The notes under the pieces are model-generated. The model did not search any database and was not told the DNA's origin. It saw nothing but the letters and a program-made list of their open reading frames with translations. From positions 1-64,000 of the forward strand of contig JAUPSS010000011.1 of the NCBI GenBank assembly GCA_040285825.1: a DNA stretch of 64,000 bases, in the 5' to 3' direction. A program made the translations under genes and the position numbers. Origin of the DNA: Eukaryota sp. TZLM1-RC. Lineage: Eukaryota > Protista > Metamonada: BaSk clade. Position 1 is the first letter of the stretch; each line of letters opens with the position of its first letter. Below, piece after piece: positions 3,884 through 41,915 of the stretch.

Positions 3884-6800
3884 TTGGCTAGGGGTAGTAG
3901 TAATAGTAGTAATAGAGGCAGAGGTAGACGTAGAGGAAGAGGCAAGGGCCCTTCTAGTAGTAATAAACGTTCCCATAAATATTCAATGTTTACTATAGAG
4001 CAAGATAGCTCTCCAACCGGTAATACATCAAAGCAACGTTCAAACAAATGTTCCTTGTTTACTATAGAGCAAGACAGCTCTCCAGCACGTAAAACACCAA
4101 ACATAAAACAAACCTCAGTCTCCAACCAGTGGATTAAGTGTTTAACTAATCCTTTGACTACCCGGAATTTTAAAACAGCTACAACGATAGAAACACCAAA
4201 TAAACCCTGTTTCAATCATGAGTTCGACTCGAACCCAGACTCAGCGTCCCACAGCGATATCTTCATGGTTCGCACCTCAGATGTCGCACGCAAAAATTTA
4301 AAATTGAAATTTTCAATAAATAACTGCGAAATAGAAGGGATCATCGACTCTGGAGCTTCGATATCAGTCATCACTGTTGATTTAGCAGAGAGATGCAACA
4401 TGGTAAAGACTAACCATTGCATAAACTTTAAGTCAGCAAACAACATCATGTCGAAGTCTTTAGGATCAGCAGAAGGCACACTGAGCTTCAGACTCGGTAG
4501 TGTAACCCAACTAGTACACGTGAAACATAGCTTGGCCATCATTCCTGGCAACAATATGTTACTAATTGGTAGAGACCTGTTGCATCACCTAGGCTTATTG
4601 AACGATGAAGGCCTCTTCATCAAGATGGATGAGGAACATCGTACATTACTTCTGCCTGAGGCTGAATTCGACCATCGAATCTCCCAAGTCTCAGATGTCG
4701 TCAACGTCCCCAGACGTTGGTTGGAGCACATACAGTCTTCTGGTTGTACTATTAACCTCGACTGTGATAACGACAAGAAGACCTTACTTCTAACCTTGAA
4801 AGAGTTCGAAGAAACATTCACCCTTAAGCCGCATGCTGATGGGATTGACTGTCCTCCAATGGAGATCAACTTTCATGATGAAAGTATTCGAGTCAGACGA
4901 CCCCCTCGTAGGTTAAACCCCGAGAAGCAGAAAGTCGCCGAACAGATCTTCGATGAACTCGTCGAGTCTGGATTTGCTGTACCATCGAACCATGAGTTCA
5001 GCTCTCCAGTATGTCTTGTGGTATACCCTGATCATCGTAAGCCTCGCCTTACTGGTGATTACAGCGGCAAGGACGGAGTCAACGCCAACACTATTCCCGT
5101 TGAACCTAATCTCCCCAGAATATCCGATGTGCTAGTCTTCCTTTCGGAAGCCAATTTCATCGGTACCCTTGACCTCCCCAAAGCCTTTTGGCAACTAAAG
5201 ATTGCAGAAAAGGACTGGGAGAAGACTGCCTTAAGCATCCCTGGCAAAAGTATCATGTTTAAACGTGCTGCTTTCGGCCTCAAGAACGTTCCTGCAGTCT
5301 TCCAGAACGTTATGGCAGACATCTTCTCCGGAGACGGTGTATTCATCTATATAGATGACATCATTATAGTAGGTAGAACCTTCAACGAGTTCCTCGGACG
5401 TCTAAGACGTGTCCTCGAGAAAGCTCGAACCCGTAGAGTTAGCCTTGGACTGCCCAAGTGCCATTTTTGTGTCCTCTAGACACCCAATAAAGATCCTTGG
5501 TAGCAGATTCCAACACAAAACCAGGACCATAGATCCTACACGCACAGAGTCTTTACTGAATCTTCCCAGACCTAAGACTGTGAAAGACGCCCGTAGCCTT
5601 ATCGGCTCAGTCAACTTCATTAGGGAATGGCTTCCCCAGGTAACCAAGCATGTTGCCCCGATCATCAAATTAACACATGGCAAAACCACGTCGCTTGCAG
5701 TGGAAAGACACTCACAACTACCATTTAGCCGAAATCAAACGTCTGATCGCGGAGCATATGCCTCTCAACTTACCTCCGGTGGATAACCAAGTACTAATTA
5801 GTTGTGATGCCTCTGATATAGCAGTTGGCGGCGTGATTTGGGAACAAATAGAACCCACTAAGGACCCTGGTACTTCCTTACTCAATAGGAAATGTAGACC
5901 AATCAGCTTCTTCAGCAGATTGTTGACTAACTCCCAGCAGAACTGGCCCACGGTACAGAAAGAGCTCTATGCTATCCTTCTCATGCTTACCGAAAGTGGC
6001 TTCGAGAACTACCTCAAAGGAAGGCGTCTGATCATTTTCACAGATCACCAAAACCTAACTTACATGCTTACCGCTCCGAACAAAAACAGAATAGTCAGAA
6101 GGTGGCTTCCCATCTTTTCTGAGTTCCTATTCGACATAGTTCATACAAAAGGGGAAGAGAACCATTGGGCAGACATGCTATCTAGGATAGTACCGCCCCA
6201 AGACAATCATACCATCAACCATCTGGTACATTCTAATGACCAAGAGTTTCACCCTATCTACTACACAAATAGGATTGACGAAACTGAGTCAGAGAGATGC
6301 TTCGTTGAAGATCTCCATACATTTGAGAAGGTGCTCATCCTTCAAGACAAATGCTCCAATGACCTTCCACTCTTCGAGCCATGGCTCTGCAAGATCAGGT
6401 CCGAACAAAAGCGAGCCCTCGCTAACCAGGACACCTCGTTCAACAACTGTACTTTGGATAGTCGTCTAGATCTTTATCTGACTCCAGAGCACAAGATCGT
6501 GATTCCTCAATCACTGGTTAAGGATACGCTTAACCTTCTACATGGACTCCCGCAAGGTGGCCACCCCAGTAAGGCAGAAAGTCTCCTCAGACTCAAGAAC
6601 AGCGACTACTGGTGGCCTAACATGCTTTCAGACATGACCAAGCACGTCCAAGAATGCCCCTCCTGTCAGAAGACAGCAGCAGTCCCCAAACTGCATGTCC
6701 CTACAACTGGTTCCTTGTGGGCTGACAGACCATTCGCAAGAGTTAACGTCGACGTCATTGGTCCTCTTCCAGAAGATCAAGACGGCCACAGATACATTCT

Positions 6801-10676: not shown

Positions 10677-10748
10677 TTCGCATACCGGGAATCGAACCCG
10701 GGTCTAGTATGTGAAAGACACTAATGCTAGCCACTACACCATATGCAA
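10677..10748 (-). tRNA. tRNA-Glu(UUC)
   Basis: Cloverleaf TTGCATA TG GTGT..GCAT T AGTGT-CTTTCAC-ATACT AGAC CCGGG-TTCGATT-CCCGG TATGCGA A; followed by T5 Pol III terminator. Confidence 0.95.
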
Positions 10749-20702: not shown

Positions 20703-21590
20703 CTAATTCTTTTCTGTTGATTCTAATTGTCTCTTCAGTAATAACTGATCCTTTTCTGAGCTCTTCTTCCACTCATCTTTATAATTTTCAAGTTTTTCAA
20801 TCCATTCCGCGTCCTTTGAACTACAAATATTTGTCAGCTGAGACTTGACACTTGTCAGCTCAGAGAACAGCTCAGTGACACGTGTTTCTGCTGAATTCAA
20901 CTGACTTTTGTAATTTTGCGCTTCCTTTTGAATTTGTTGAAATTCAGTTTCTAAAATATTATTTTCAGCCACTTGATTAGTTAATTCCAAATCCTTTTCA
21001 TTAATTTCAGACATTAACTGGGAATTTCGGAATCTTAACTTTGAAATTTCAGTTTCCAGTTTAGACATTGTTGATTGGTGATCAGAAACTTGCGATTGTA
21101 AATTAACCAACTCTAACTGTTGGTTGACCGCCTTGCCATCGTGATTGCTTTTCAGCTCAGTTATTAACCTTTCCTTTTCAATCAAATCATTTTCAAGTTC
21201 GGAAAGCTGCAGACACTGAGATTGAGTAGTTTCATTTAATTTAGATACTTCACACTCAAGTTGCTGGTTTAGTGATTGAACACTGCTCATTTCTTGGTTA
21301 AGTTGTGATATGTGCGCATCATGAGAGTGTAGAGACGACAGAGCAAGGGAAAGAGAGGACTGTAGTTGAGATTCAATTGAGGTAAGTTCTGCATTGATAT
21401 CATGGCGAAGGTCATTGAGATCAGAACGAAGCGAGAACGCATTTGAAACCTTCTGGAGTGTGTCTGGAGCGAAAAATACATCACTTACTTGTGGAAGAGG
21501 AAGATTATGTGATTTGCAGTAGTTTTGATAAGTAGTGATTGTGTGTTTAAGCTGAATCACCTTGGTTTGTAAAGAATTGAGTTTAGACAT
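20703..21590 (-). CDS. Coiled-coil protein, possibly 3'-truncated by the CRE fragment
   Basis: 295-aa heptad-rich ORF whose stop lies at the junction with the retroelement fragment. Confidence 0.65.
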   Translation of the reverse strand: MSKLNSLQTKVIQLKHTITTYQNYCKSHNLPLPQVSDVFFAPDTLQKVSNAFSLRSDLNDLRHDINAELTSIESQLQSSLSLALSSLHSHDAHISQLNQEMSSVQSLNQQLECEVSKLNETTQSQCLQLSELENDLIEKERLITELKSNHDGKAVNQQLELVNLQSQVSDHQSTMSKLETEISKLRFRNSQLMSEINEKDLELTNQVAENNILETEFQQIQKEAQNYKSQLNSAETRVTELFSELTSVKSQLTNICSSKDAEWIEKLENYKDEWKKSSEKDQLLLKRQLESTEKN

Positions 21591-21845
21591 CGGCTAATAA
21601 CACAAAACGTCAAACAGTGGTAACCTGTTGAGATTAATGGAGGACGTGGATAAAATGAACTGAGATGCTGAACTACTCAGTTGGAGAATTCTTACAAAGT
21701 AAATGGAAAGTGTGGGAAAGTGTGGGAATAGTGAAAACCTCCCAAAACCAAGTTGAGGGTTAAAAACCTCCCAGAATAGGCAACCAGAAGTCGAAAATGG
21801 GTGACAAGTGTAAAATTTGATAGATGAGCTCTTTATTCTCACTAC

Positions 21846-23801
21846 ATGTCAGACACCCCCTCTGTATCACGTGTATTCACTCGGTCTTGTGCACTTAACT
21901 CGCTGCTGACCCCTGCAGCGGTGCAACAAATTCGGACTGACCTTCCTGTGGTCACCGAGATTTGTCATGAAGCGTCTTTATTACTTCAATCTTTTCTTCT
22001 AAATTTTCCGTTGGCATCTAGAGGTTTAGTGGAACAGGATGTATGGTATCTGTTTATGACCGTCATCACCACTGGTTCTTTTCCAAAGCCTTCCACATCT
22101 AAAGGCCAACGCCAATTACTCCATATCTTTTACAATGGATTTCTTCCTGAATGCCCACAAGACAGGTCTCTTGTTTCATTGTGGGAAAATTCTTTAGTGC
22201 CTTACAGAAATTCATTCCATCTTTTCCTCAATGATTGGCTGCAGTCCCAGAACTGTAATTTTATCAATAGAAAAGGGCTTTCTTCTTATCTTGCCTGTCG
22301 TGCTCGTCAATTGGCCTCCAACGTTAAGACATGTTTACCCAAAATTTGTCAATCCTGGACAAAAAACTTTATTCGTGCTCATTGTAGAGCCCTGAATAAA
22401 ACAAATGTCTTTGCAAATAATATTCTTTCACTTTTGCCAGATGAACTACTAGCCCAACCCGAGGAAGTAGTAGTTGATTCTGTTCTTGAATACCTCATCA
22501 ATTTCAATTTGAATAATTCAAGAGAAAGATTTTTTTATTGAATGCATGTAGGTTTATCTTGAATCTCTTTCAAAGATTTCCTACCACTGCCTCCCTACTG
22601 TCCTCACATGATAAAATCACTGTTTCATCAAAGGAAATTAGTGAGCTTTTTCTCTTCAATCTTAAAATTTCACAATACTTACTCACTTTCTTTTCTCATA
22701 TGCATTGCTGGAAGAAATTTAGAATAATACCTTTAGCTTCTCATAAAGGTTCTAAATTTATTGAGGTACCTTCACAAATTTTCCACTCTGTGAAAAAAAT
22801 TTCCAATTATTGAAGGATCATCTTCCAAAACAAAGTTTATCAAAAATACATGTCTGAAACGAGTATTCAAACAATGTCCTTACCAAAAATTCAATATCAA
22901 CAGAAAAAGTTTGAAAAATAGATTTAACAAAATTTTATTGAAAACTAATGGTAATGAACTGCTTTTGACCTTTGAAGGTAAAAATAATGACTCAGAAAAC
23001 ACAGATGAGCTGGATGAACCACCGAAAAAGAAAAGAAGATCAAAAAGTGAAATGAAAAGTGACCCTAATGCCAACAAAACCAAAGAAACACAGTTGAAGG
23101 GTACTAAAAAAATGCCCCGTCGAAGACGTAGACATCCAGTCGAAATTTTACCTGAAAGGCCCCTTATCGGCGTTGATCTTGGCCAATCAAGATTATGTGG
23201 TTACTTCTTAAATGATAATCAATGTGGAGTTATCCCTTGTCCAACTGGCAGAAGATACATGACAAAAAATTCACCCAGTAAACACTCTCCCAACCAATAT
23301 TCCGTTCAAAATTTCAACCAATATTTGAACCATTGGAATTTGGTCAGGAGGAAAGTGTATTTGGAAAGTAATCGCCAGAAATGGAAAATAATTAAATTTG
23401 ATAACCGCAGACGAAAAGAGAGACGGTTCAGAGAGAGTCTCAACAAATTTCAAAGGCTGGCTGGACATCCTGAAAAACTCTATCTTGCTGTGGGTTCTGC
23501 TAATTTCCCTTCTCATTGCCGAAAAGTCAATCGATATGGATCAGCAAGGGCTTTCAGAAAATGGTTGTGTTATCAAAAGGACGTGAAGCACTTGTCAACC
23601 AGTGAATTTAATACAAGCAAAATGTCAAGTTGTTGCATGGCCGAGAATATTCAAGCAGGCTCATGGCAGATGCGTATTTGTACTGAGTGTCAAATAGTAT
23701 ATGACAGAGATATTTCCGCTGCAAAAAATATTCAAATTAAGAAGAAAGCGGAATTGTGGCCGGAAAGATACATTTGCCCAGATGCTCTGCTGAGGAGATG
23801 A
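21846..23801 (+). CDS. Fanzor (eukaryotic TnpB homolog), probably intact 651 aa
   Basis: RuvC-I IGVDLG, RuvC-II SEFNTSKMSSCC, CTEC zinc finger plus RuvC-III DRDISAAKNI; two frame breaks at T7 (22530-22536) and A7 (22793-22799). Confidence 0.88.
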
Positions 23802-23933
23802 ATAGGGAACATGAGCATACAGAAACAAAAACTTTTGAGACCGATCTACAAATACCTTAGTAGCATTTGGTAGATCCACTTAGATACATCAAGTCGCGAG
23901 GCTTTGTTCTGTGAATGCAGTAGGTGTATTCAA
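23802..23933 (+). ncRNA. Candidate omega-RNA scaffold of Fanzor 21846-23801
   Basis: Stems gatctacaaat/atttggtagatc, aagtc-GCGA-ggctt, tgaatgca-gtagg-tgtattca ending TTCAA. Confidence 0.5.
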
Positions 23934-24879
23934 GCGAGGCAGCCCATTGATGAAGATCATGATTGTCTTTGTCAAATGATGCTACATGTCTCTTACAGCC
24001 TGTGAGTAGACATTGAGAAAGTTGAAAACAGGAGTGAATTTCACAGGGGAATGCATGATAAGTGAAATTCACAGTATCATAATCACCATTCCCAATGCCA
24101 TTTCCACCTGATTCCCAAAATACCTTTTCTTACTCTTGACATCTTTTCACAAGACAGTTTATCTAAATCAAAGAACAATGCTTTTGAGGACATCAGGCTA
24201 TTATCTAGAATATTTGAAATATTTAAAAATTGAACAACATTATGAATTATCAAGTCCACATTTGTTTCTTCTTTTCTTACAAATATATTTAATAAAGAGA
24301 TTATCAACGTTTTAAGCCCAAATTTCGAGGCCAAGACCCTACTAACAAACTTTGAAAAAGGATTAGTTAGAGTATCAATAGAGAACATGGGTAACAAACA
24401 AGCTAACAGCTCCGAAATTTCGTGTAATATTCGAGAAAAGATCAGACCGAGATCAGGATCTGAATCTAAAAATTTGTTCAAAACATTGAAGTACGAAACT
24501 GTCAAGGTAATTACATTAGATTTGTCCGAATTCAGTTCAAAAGAACAATTCTGAAAAAAGCAAGAAAATACAAATGAATTGAAAAAGGGGGAAATGTAAA
24601 GACACATCGAATACCTGATCCACATCATGGCGGGAGAGAAAAGACTCCAAAAACCCTTAGATATGTGTTGCCCACTTGCAAGTAGTGTGGCTGTCTATGG
24701 AATCCTATTGTCCATGTTGTTGTCAATATGATTAATGTCGTAGATGAGTGTATTAAAGGAAATGAAAGAGCTTAAGTTTTCACCTGGGTATTTCATATGG
24801 AGTGCATTAAACTTTTCTAAACTCCACCATTTTCCATTCCTCCACTAACTTTTTTCCTTTTTATGTTGCAATGAAATTT

Positions 24880-39642: not shown

Positions 39643-39724
39643 TGAATCTAAAGCAGTTGAAATTTGTAGAAGAAATCTTGGTTCAATGAATTCTGTCCCA
39701 ATTTTTTTTAATACATATAAAAAT

Positions 39725-41915
39725 TATTATTTATTGAACTTTTACACTTGATTAAACTAATTCATAACTAATAGGACGAATATCATTGAACCAAGATTTC
39801 CTCTACAAAATCTTGATCTGCTTGCTGTCTAGCTAAAGCTTCTCTTATTCGATTGAAAAACCGAGGCAATCTATTAAAAATGGCAAATTGAATCCGAGAA
39901 CGCCATAAAAAATATCAAAACTTTTCATTGTGTTTTGTTGAACCATTTTTTGGAAGTCATTCAAAAAAGTTTCTGGTTCTACTGATAGTCTTCCGTTTAT
40001 CGAAAATGGGAAAGCAATAAAAACTAGCTCTGTATTTCTACCAGCATTAGCTTCTTCAATAACTTTATCATATTTTCTATGCTTTTCTTTTGCTTTAAAA
40101 CCAAGAGCACTTGCAGGATTAAGTTTTCTTCTGTGAACCAAAGTATCATTTGCAACATTACATGAGACAAAATCAACGATAGTTTCAGAGTTCTCAATCC
40201 AATCACAATATACATCACCTCTATCATCAGAACCAAAATCATTCAGAGAAAGTGTTTCCTTCAGCAGAGGCTCTTTGATACACGATATTCTTGCAGTTTG
40301 TGCTATAGTGAAAACAGTGTCTCTAACAGCATCATGTAATGAAGAACGATAAGTTATCAATTTAGAACAATCCAGAGCATGGCGCAAAGTGAGTTGAGGT
40401 GAATTCGAACAAATAGATTTTTCTTTTGATAATAATTGATTCAATGGGGATATTCAAATGTAATCTCATTTTTGTTACAATTGCTTCATTAGTGGCACAC
40501 AACCCAAATCTTTGTGGTACAATGGTTACAAAAAGTGAAGAATCTGATGACTTGTTTTCACAAACACCCATTTCCAATAACAATGAGTGAAGATCTTGAT
40601 TTAAAACAGCCCAGTTGCATTCATTATTATAAAGATGTTTTTCATACATTCCAGTCAATCGTTTCGGTAATGTTCGAAGAGTGTAGTTCAAATTTAAAAC
40701 ATTTTTTTCTGGAATATTGCCATTGAATGATTGGGGAAAGCATCGACGCCATTCTTCTACATCAATTTTTGAAATTTCTTCATTTAATGCAAAAACAGTG
40801 GAACTTTGCGTTGCCATTAATGAACCTTCCCAATCTGCAAATCTTTCGGAAAACTCAAATATTGCATTTTTGCATCCACCAATAAAAGCACACGAAGTAA
40901 GAACAGAAGCCTTCGTCCATCCTAAACCGCGATAATGTGGACTAAGATAAGCATGGTCTGGAATTTGGAACATTTTACATTCCAGTAATTGTGACAAAAC
41001 TTTTACACGTAACTCATTAAACTTCTGAGCCAAAGGCCTAGTGACGAGAGGATTTGTAGATCAAAATATATGATAGAAGTTGGAACTAAAACACAGTCTT
41101 ATAATGGTAAATTTGATGTGTTTTGGTATATCTAAATTCATCATTCGGTCAATATTGTAGGAAATTGAGTTCAACTTTTCAAACAATTTGTTAGTAATTT
41201 CATCATTATTTCCTAAAAACGAACCCAAATGACGAATAGCATCAATTGAATATAATTTGGCTTGAAATTCAATACCATCAACTATTGTGGAAACTGGAGA
41301 ATTCGATAACAAAACACATTTAAGTAAATTAAGTCGGAGACCAATTTTGGTAAATAATTCTTTAAAACATACAGTTGCTTGTTTCACAATATTTAAATCA
41401 CCAATAAGCACAACATCATCCATATATGCAATCATTTTTAGTGAAGGAAACATCTCTTGAATTTGCAGTAGAATAGGATGAATGGCCAAACAAAACAAAA
41501 GAGGTCCTAACGGATCTCCTTGCTTTACGCCACTTGATGAACTCAAAATGTTGTTACCAAAATGTAAATTAGAATATGTGCAATATGTTGATTGAAAATA
41601 CGGTATTAATTCCGGCATATATTGCAACAAAGCACCATGAATACTGCAACGACTGAGTGAATTGAATGCATTATTAAAATCCAATGAGATACAAACATTG
41701 GATTCATTTTGGCGAAATAATTCATCTGTAGCAAATATCGCTGAAGATACTCCATCAGTGGTATTAATTCCATATTGAAAGGGTAATAAAATCGTTTTTG
41801 CTTTTTCATTGAACCTGCTTAAGCAACAAGCAGAAATAATATTATGTATGCTCTCAGAGACCGCAATAGGACGAACATCCATTTTTGAATTTTTGATACA
41901 TATTTTATTCAAACA
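39725..41915 (-). mobile_element. CRE-like non-LTR retrotransposon: RT + zinc finger + RLE, 5'-truncated, frameshifted
   Basis: RPIAVSE, QYGI, LDFNNAFNS, GVKQGDPLGPLLF, YMDD, HLGS; HALDC..HDAVRD..KEP..RGD..D..K.KY. Confidence 0.93.

Follow-up and report, generated by a model that had tools for sequence, protein, structure and literature searches.

The stretch of DNA analyzed here (hereafter the window) comprises positions 1 to 64,000 of the forward strand of contig JAUPSS010000011.1 (assembly GCA_040285825.1) from Eukaryota sp. TZLM1-RC, the free-living metamonad Skoliomonas litria. On its plus strand it holds a copy of a repeat that carries a gene for a Fanzor-type protein, the reading frame of which is broken twice. 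Fanzors are eukaryotic RNA-guided nucleases and are of practical interest as compact genome editors. The proteins of the region match only 'hypothetical proteins' of Eukaryota sp. TZLM1-RC (81-97% identity), and more than 80 fragments of the repeat family to which the copy belongs have been annotated; the annotated proteins of the family form two clusters of 82 and 27 members. This family is Fanzor-type, eukaryotic, transposon-borne and multi-copy, and the S. litria genome in which it resides measures 31.9 Mb and is 55% repetitive (PMC11316075). At the left limit of the window copy, homology to the family is clear from position 21714 and diverged from 21698, with weak similarity to an upstream module at 21599-21713. 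The features of the copy as far as the end of the gene are listed below by window position, with residue counts taken from an alignment of 37 sequences; ORF stands for open reading frame.

21698..24076, plus strand: window copy of the Fanzor repeat; right end sharp, left limit uncertain
21846..22541, plus strand: ORF piece 1, 231 aa, N-terminal helical region, frame 0, its stop caused by the T7 run
22517..22813, plus strand: ORF piece 2, 98 codons open, frame 2
22530..22536, plus strand: T7 run, first frame break
22793..22799, plus strand: A7 run, second frame break
22794..23801, plus strand: ORF piece 3, 335 codons and stop, frame 0; WED hairpin, basic linker, RuvC-I, RuvC-II and RuvC-III, TNB zinc finger
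22944..22952, plus strand: TNG, counterpart of the 'TDG' WED motif of Fanzor1; T in 29/37, D in 22 or N in 10 of 37, G in 32/37
23019..23135, plus strand: PPKKKRR and MPRRRRRH, basic stretches of a low-confidence linker
23175..23177, plus strand: RuvC-I catalytic Asp, in GVDLG; D in 37/37, next residue P in 30 and L in 5
23604..23606, plus strand: RuvC-II catalytic Glu, in SEFNTSK; E in 36/37; the 'alternative' position of Fanzors, just upstream of the zinc finger
23631..23690, plus strand: zinc-finger cysteines, CC ... CTEC, with Ser in place of the first Cys of the usual CxxC
23709..23711, plus strand: RuvC-III catalytic Asp, in DRD; R in 35/37, D in 34/37

The Fanzor-like gene and its two frame breaks

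The window copy was compared with eight other S. litria copies using blastn and MAFFT. The original prediction, made from the letters of the window, held that the three ORF pieces join into one frame of 651 aa and that the gap then reads VKKFPIIEG without a stop. Adding one T to the T7 run and removing one A from the A7 run indeed yields a single 651-codon frame, and the same residues are found in the paralogous proteins, which are continuous across both breaks (RERFFLLNAC, SVKKFPIIEG). The run at the first break is T8 in L001, L009 and the copy encoding P0178; L003 and the copies encoding P0176 and P0179 likewise lack one base there. The run at the second break is A6 in all seven other copies aligned there, A7 being private to the window copy. 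A majority consensus built from seven DNA copies stays open over 651 codons. In addition, an intact paralogue, P0139 (651 aa), is encoded by a contiguous ORF at L009:4001-5956, which is 97.4% identical in nucleotides to the window copy and carries T8 and A6. Because the paralogues are colinear, the seven-copy consensus is open and intact P0139 has T8/A6, the proposed reconstruction of the ancestral 651-aa frame is, as judged from these alignments, correct. ORF piece 1 is a separate protein in the public annotation, and an exact protein look-up of the frameshifted ORFs returned the NCBI record alone for the first and no match in the collection for the second and third.

The frame changes could also be biological devices for read-through (short introns or programmed frameshifts), and both a eukaryotic host and the slippery nature of the two runs would suit such devices. 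However, paralogues as well as orthologues in three species are colinear, with no interruption at either site, and the ORF of the intact paralogue is contiguous in the DNA. Introns and programmed frameshifts were thus rejected on the grounds of colinearity, and we regard them as extremely improbable.

The assignment of the protein is based on domain, motif and fold. ORF piece 3 matches Pfam PF07282 (TNB, OrfB zinc-ribbon; Cas12f1-like) with 29.4 bits against a cut-off of 26.3 (window:22911-23798), and there is a weak match of NCBIfam guided_TnpB to the last 60 residues. The catalytic residues D, E and D and the CC..CTEC zinc finger, which had been read from the translation in the original prediction, all lie on invariant or near-invariant columns of the 37-sequence alignment; in the numbering of ORF piece 3 the triad is D128, E271 and D306. 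A predicted model of the window's own C-terminal 335 residues has a pLDDT (predicted local distance difference test) of ~90 over the RuvC part and places two long helices between RuvC-I and RuvC-II. Foldseek relates this model with probability 1.0 to Cas12f, TnpB and Fanzor structures, while VIA gives Z 14.2 over 212 residues for PpFz and Z 13.7 over 217-222 residues for SpuFz. In a full-length model of the orthologue P0023, the N-terminal 420 residues of which are of low confidence (pLDDT 40-66), 441-470 residues align with Fanzor1 structures versus at most ~320 for TnpB, Fanzor2 and Cas12f. The comparison with SpuFz1 and TnpB by HMM (hidden Markov model) and structure that had been proposed as a check therefore gives a TNB domain above cut-off, a predicted RuvC fold and the best Z to Fanzor1. 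With the triad conserved and the fold nearest to Fanzor1 structures, the models support a Fanzor/TnpB-type RuvC nuclease. PPKKKRR and MPRRRRRH, the two basic stretches, resemble a nuclear localisation signal.

The N-terminal half appears to be peculiar to the genus. The N-terminal piece matched no Pfam or NCBIfam family, and a search of the Atlas structures returned generic helical-repeat look-alikes below the reliability count. An exhaustive profile search of 1.84 billion representatives found 91 relatives at E<0.001; the nearest all come from three Skoliomonas species, and the next are metagenomic proteins of 550-690 aa with the same domain. Across the Pfam, NCBIfam, profile and Atlas searches, no relatives of the N-terminal ~300 residues were recognised outside the genus. 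When solved structures were searched by sequence, both with the single protein and with a profile, the sole match was UnCas12m4a (E 0.007, TNB region) and no Fanzor was retrieved.

Intact genes are present in three species, namely P0139 in S. litria, P0152 (648 aa) in sp. GEM-RC1 and P0023 (659 aa) in sp. TZLM3-RCL. Among the S. litria copies the ratio of nonsynonymous to synonymous substitution rates (dN/dS) is about 0.3, with values from 0.24 to 0.59. The intact S. litria and GEM-RC1 genes share 59% amino-acid identity, with dN 0.35, dS saturated and a third-position identity of 43%; the nucleotide identity of their coding sequences (CDS) is 62%. Intact genes in three species, the low dN/dS and a dN of 0.35 with dS saturated indicate that the Fanzor-like protein has been under purifying selection in the past.

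The copy in the window is most probably a young pseudogene, because it combines two one-base frameshifts with three substitutions that break pairs in core helices of the 3' RNA structure described below, and because it has no terminal-repeat left end. According to the original prediction the gene is intact and functional, the T7 and A7 runs being homopolymer errors; such miscalls would have been left in a repeat beyond the reach of short-read polishing. We find this unlikely, yet a number of observations speak for it and weigh against a pseudogene. The assembly was built from R9.4 Nanopore reads with Albacore calls, followed by Nanopolish and then Illumina correction, and the chemistry is error-prone in runs (PMC11316075). 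All three one-base differences of the window copy from the family lie in homopolymer runs, and each of the two breaks is a run of 7 that differs by one base in length from intact paralogues, where the runs are T8 and A6. There is no private substitution within ~200 nt of either run, so short reads cannot be placed uniquely at the runs. T7 recurs in copies that are not the closest relatives, while the closest sister (encoding P0178) has T8; this scatter on the copy tree is a mixed signal, equally compatible with a slippage hot spot and with a systematic miscall. Furthermore, the window copy is free of nonsense codons and its catalytic residues are untouched.

Other observations point to real decay. 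Leftover run errors appear to be infrequent in the family, because over 4.3 kb neither L001 nor L009 departs from the copy consensus by a single base in run length, and the L009 frame is contiguous and open; none of the other sampled copies, moreover, has A7. In each sibling of similar age there are 3-4 indels, including changes of 2, 3 and 8 nt and many outside homopolymers, and nonsense codons occur in 4 of the 7 sibling copies compared (L002-L005), so that real decay at such a rate is to be expected. Finally, sequencing error does not explain the six broken RNA pairs of the window copy (three of them in core helices, versus none in L001 and L003) or the missing left part of the element, and these weigh against miscalls. 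Since it is a probable pseudogene, the window copy is of value mainly as a pointer to its family, although its RNA might be usable in trans by the protein from an intact copy. We thus favor, with reasonable rather than high confidence, the view that the locus corresponds to the right-hand 2.4 kb of a single copy of an S. litria transposon, the family of which encodes a divergent Fanzor1-like RuvC endonuclease (651 aa when intact), and that this copy is probably a pseudogene.

The conserved structured region 3' of the gene

The stretch from the stop codon to the repeat's right end is conserved and structured, and its features are as follows.

23832..24076, plus strand: conserved structured 3' region, candidate omega-RNA scaffold, with cross-species identity and compensatory changes
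23843-55/23863-76, plus strand: helix
23877-90/23923-36, plus strand: helix
23891-95/23900-04, plus strand: helix with GCGA loop
23909-12/23917-20, plus strand: helix
23949-59/23964-73, plus strand: helix
23999-24003/24028-32, plus strand: helix
24034..24072 (24034-24044 / 24062-24072), plus strand: terminal 11-bp hairpin, with a C-G to U-A compensatory change in GEM-RC1
~24064-24076, plus strand: right terminal repeat, ...GAAATTCACAGTA, overlapped by the 3' arm of the terminal hairpin
24077..24100, plus strand: flanking DNA, which, should the RNA be an omega-RNA, would provide the guide past any target-site duplication; by analogy with Fanzor1 biology (PMC10432273, PMC10711439)

A shared end, ...GTGAAATTCACAGTA, is found in 9 of the 9 S. 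litria copies in which the end is intact as well as in both GEM-RC1 copies, and falls at window position 24076; this sharp right end replaces the earlier placement of the element end at 23935. Over the 224 alignable non-coding positions before it, S. litria and GEM-RC1 are 78% identical, a value above that of second codon positions; the putative non-coding RNA region is, on this comparison, kept more strictly than the protein itself. In the last 34 codons, third positions are 68% identical between the species, and the conserved nucleic-acid element thus probably begins within the CDS and may reach about 100 nt into its end.

The secondary structure was predicted from the S. litria copies alone and then tested on GEM-RC1, the one other species on which the covariation test rests. 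In GEM-RC1, 55 pairs are unchanged, 17 are kept through changes (six of them two-sided) and eight, mostly in the long-range outer helix, are broken, while slid controls gave 0-1 two-sided changes versus the six observed. The structure contains 13 G-U pairs, and the plus strand folds at -69 versus -51 kcal/mol for the minus strand, which together argue for a plus-strand RNA. The fold of the window copy's RNA alone is not significant by itself (z-score -1.4). By blastn no cross-species similarity was detected on the left side of the element, and the constraint is therefore specific to the right end. An antisense frame of ~70 codons (window 23857-24072, minus strand) is open across the 3' region in the S. 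litria copies; it was rejected as the cause of the conservation, as the open frame in GEM-RC1 is not colinear, and it is probably not a gene.

These results agree in part with what had been proposed for the 3' side. A structured RNA downstream of the gene is borne out by a strongly conserved RNA-like region, while the proposed limits of 23800-23950 are wrong at the 3' end. The stem with the GCGA loop (23891-23895 / 23900-23904) is one of the helices conserved in the family. The 'terminal hairpin ending TTCAA' (~23912-23932), in contrast, is neither terminal nor a feature of the family, as the repeat continues for 140 nt to 24076. It is an alternative local fold with good pairing only in the window copy, owing to two private substitutions at 23916 and 23931 that weaken the conserved helix.

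In Fanzor1 systems the RNA scaffold includes the terminal repeat, with the guide located beyond it (PMC10432273, PMC10711439), and TnpB and some Fanzor omega-RNAs reach into the end of the CDS (PMC10432273). The 3' region has the appearance that an omega-RNA scaffold should have, and we consider it a candidate for one. By analogy with other Fanzors, we infer RNA binding, guide use and cleavage for the Skoliomonas family. The protein would enter the nucleus and bind an RNA that is transcribed from the final ~250-350 nt of the element; this RNA would run through the right terminal repeat into the flanking DNA, which would be the source of the guide. The complex would then cut matching DNA, as in other Fanzors, and so may help the element to persist.

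It may be asked whether the 3' region is instead a signal acting at the level of DNA or mobility, such as subterminal transposase sites or a 3' stem-loop for copying from the 3' end. The overlap of the terminal hairpin with the terminal repeat, the constant 3' end of copies with variable 5' ends and the direct duplications of 8-12 nt in some copies would fit such a signal, and these points, together with the reliance of the covariation test on a single further species, weigh against a guide-RNA scaffold. On the other hand, the conservation is one-sided, the left subterminal part being without cross-species similarity, unlike usual transposase binding sites. The 13 G-U pairs and the clear strand preference also argue against such a signal, as does the continuation of the conservation into the last part of the CDS, a trait shared with the omega-RNAs of TnpB and of some Fanzors (PMC10432273). 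A mobility signal in place of a scaffold is thus quite improbable, and given that the terminal repeat of Fanzor1 is itself part of the scaffold (PMC10711439), the two roles are not mutually exclusive.

Ends of the element and neighboring repeats

The full element is ~3.4 kb long, because the unit shared by the GEM-RC1 copies measures 3445 bp and that of one S. litria copy, L005, 3431 bp. The first 13 nt of the GEM-RC1 unit are the exact reverse complement of the right end, and L005 shows a 13/15 match at the corresponding left place. The L005 unit is flanked by an 8-nt duplication. No transposase gene was recognized within the full element, which is thus likely non-autonomous. In the window copy, no terminal inverted repeats were found, nor was a left terminal repeat found within 7 kb.

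Other copies have group-specific left modules in common, and some of them carry 8-12 nt direct duplications at left ends that differ. The window copy shows weak similarity to just one left module (21599-21713). The following duplications of 10-12 nt each start with TA and flank units with differing left ends.

L002:3597-3608 / 6292-6303: direct duplication
L006:2828-2838 / 6220-6230: direct duplication
L005:1926-1935 / 5366-5375: direct duplication

A constant right end combined with duplications at differing left ends does not fit simple cut-and-paste transposition. It is conceivable, if less probable than not on our assessment, that Skoliomonas (BaSk clade) possesses an active lineage-specific Fanzor1-like system, with an altered RuvC-I (DLG), an N-terminal half that has no known relatives and an exceptionally long omega-RNA of ~245-350 nt with a terminal-repeat hairpin at its end, and perhaps with an unusual way of spreading, as suggested by the constant 3' and variable 5' ends, the 8-12 nt duplications and the XPG-like genes co-repeated in a sister species. 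If true, this would provide a new programmable nuclease from a halo-alkaliphilic anaerobe as well as a new mode of Fanzor mobility.

Three S. litria copies have an upstream module of up to 1 kb in common (L005:2362-2940, L006:3371-3793 and upstream in L009), which contains an opposite-strand ORF with an MJ1316 domain (RNA cyclic-end recognition, PF04457). The upstream ORF of the window at 20703-21590 was considered as a counterpart of this gene and rejected, as it encodes a generic coiled-coil protein that is unrelated. A reverse-transcriptase (RVT_1) ORF lies in a repeat of ~2.1 kb at window 39720-41912 (minus strand). A 92%-identical copy of this repeat, at L009:6226-8326, is inserted 5 nt before the right end of L009, and beyond the insert the final 17 nt of the Fanzor end appear once more. 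In L009, the only copy found with an intact ORF, gene and RNA end are therefore separated from the flank by the RVT_1 repeat.

In sp. TZLM3-RCL (L007:1923-6021 and L012:2757-6331) the Fanzor gene follows an XPG/FEN1-like nuclease gene, 54 bp downstream of it. The two genes are co-repeated over 3.6 kb at 96% identity, and there is a fused gene model, P0163, of 1323 aa. P0161 was rejected as a Fanzor, as it is the neighboring XPG-like gene. The right end of the TZLM3-RCL element follows only ~41 nt after the stop codon.

Several other repeat families of the window also occur in the flanks of Fanzor loci elsewhere in the genome (56308-57180, 31765-31994, 47401-47541, 28316-28455, 9323-9396, 61788-61976, 35265-37234 and 60439-61637). 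A tRNA-Glu (TTC) at 10677-10748 (minus strand) is the only Rfam or ARAGORN match in the window.

Relation to known RNA-guided nucleases

In the literature searched, no link between Fanzors and metamonads was found, and in public records the proteins of the family are labelled hypothetical. What is new is a genus with a divergent Fanzor1-like family under apparent purifying selection and with intact genes in three species. We regard this family as a good candidate for activity as an RNA-guided nuclease, for which a concrete pair of candidate protein (P0139) and RNA is now defined.

The fingerprints described for Fanzors are DPG at RuvC-I, an alternative RuvC-II Glu and, in Fanzor1, TDG in the WED domain (Yoon et al. 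2023, PMC10711439). At RuvC-I the window protein and every S. litria and GEM-RC1 member seen carry DLG. DPG is present in 30 of the 37 aligned relatives, TZLM3-RCL orthologues included, and DLG looks like a derived change inside a DPG clade. The alternative Glu is found at the expected distance, and Ser takes the place of the first zinc-finger Cys, with a Cys two positions on (E-FNTSKM-S-S-C-C ... CTEC-QIVYDR-D); in the published pattern the Glu lies six residues before the zinc finger and the Asp 4-8 residues after the second CxxC (PMC10711439). The distance from the RuvC-I D to the RuvC-II E is 143 residues, within the published range of 120-160 (PMC10711439). As the alternative Glu is present but the WED motif reads TNG and RuvC-I DLG, we call the family a divergent Fanzor1-like lineage and not a textbook Fanzor1.

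The miniature type V effectors Cas12f and Cas12m gave the best Foldseek E-values for the RuvC core, and the only sequence match in the PDB (Protein Data Bank), UnCas12m4a, is one of them. However, this likeness is confined to the RuvC/TNB core, and the Skoliomonas gene is a multi-copy transposon gene of a eukaryotic host with no CRISPR array. With Fanzor2 and IS607-type TnpB (ApmFz2, PDB 9B0L; ISDra2 TnpB, PDB 8H1J) the RuvC/TNB core is likewise shared (Z 12.4-12.8), the logic of a right-end omega-RNA would be the same and there is the weak guided_TnpB match. These proteins differ in having ~400-470 aa against 651 here, with only 158-178 residues aligning. No serine-recombinase (IS607 TnpA) or Y1 transposase gene was found beside any of the 12 loci fetched, and an orthologous Skoliomonas element has terminal inverted repeats.

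Compared with Fanzor1 (SpuFz1 from Spizellomyces punctatus, PDB 8GKH; PpFz, PDB 9CF1), the Skoliomonas protein has DLG against a near-universal DPG at RuvC-I, TNG against TDG in the WED domain, a displaced first zinc-finger Cys and N-terminal ~300 residues without detectable relatives outside the genus. It has no sequence-level match to the solved Fanzors, its candidate RNA scaffold would be ~245 nt or more against 75 nt in SpuFz1, and the left ends of the copies are heterogeneous. Nevertheless, Fanzor1 nucleases are likewise eukaryotic, transposon-borne and ~650 aa long, and the domain order is the same, beginning with a large N-terminal REC/WED part and continuing with RuvC-I, a pair of long helices, RuvC-II, the zinc finger and RuvC-III. 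The Fanzor1 architecture of a large REC, paired long REC2 helices and ~600-700 aa is seen in the Skoliomonas protein, as is the Glu in the 'alternative' position beside the zinc finger, and its TNG in the WED domain may be a TDG-like motif. In the SpuFz1 and SfAV Fanzor elements the nuclease is the sole encoded protein, as in the Skoliomonas element, and it is the Fanzor1 group that provides the best structural matches of the Skoliomonas protein.

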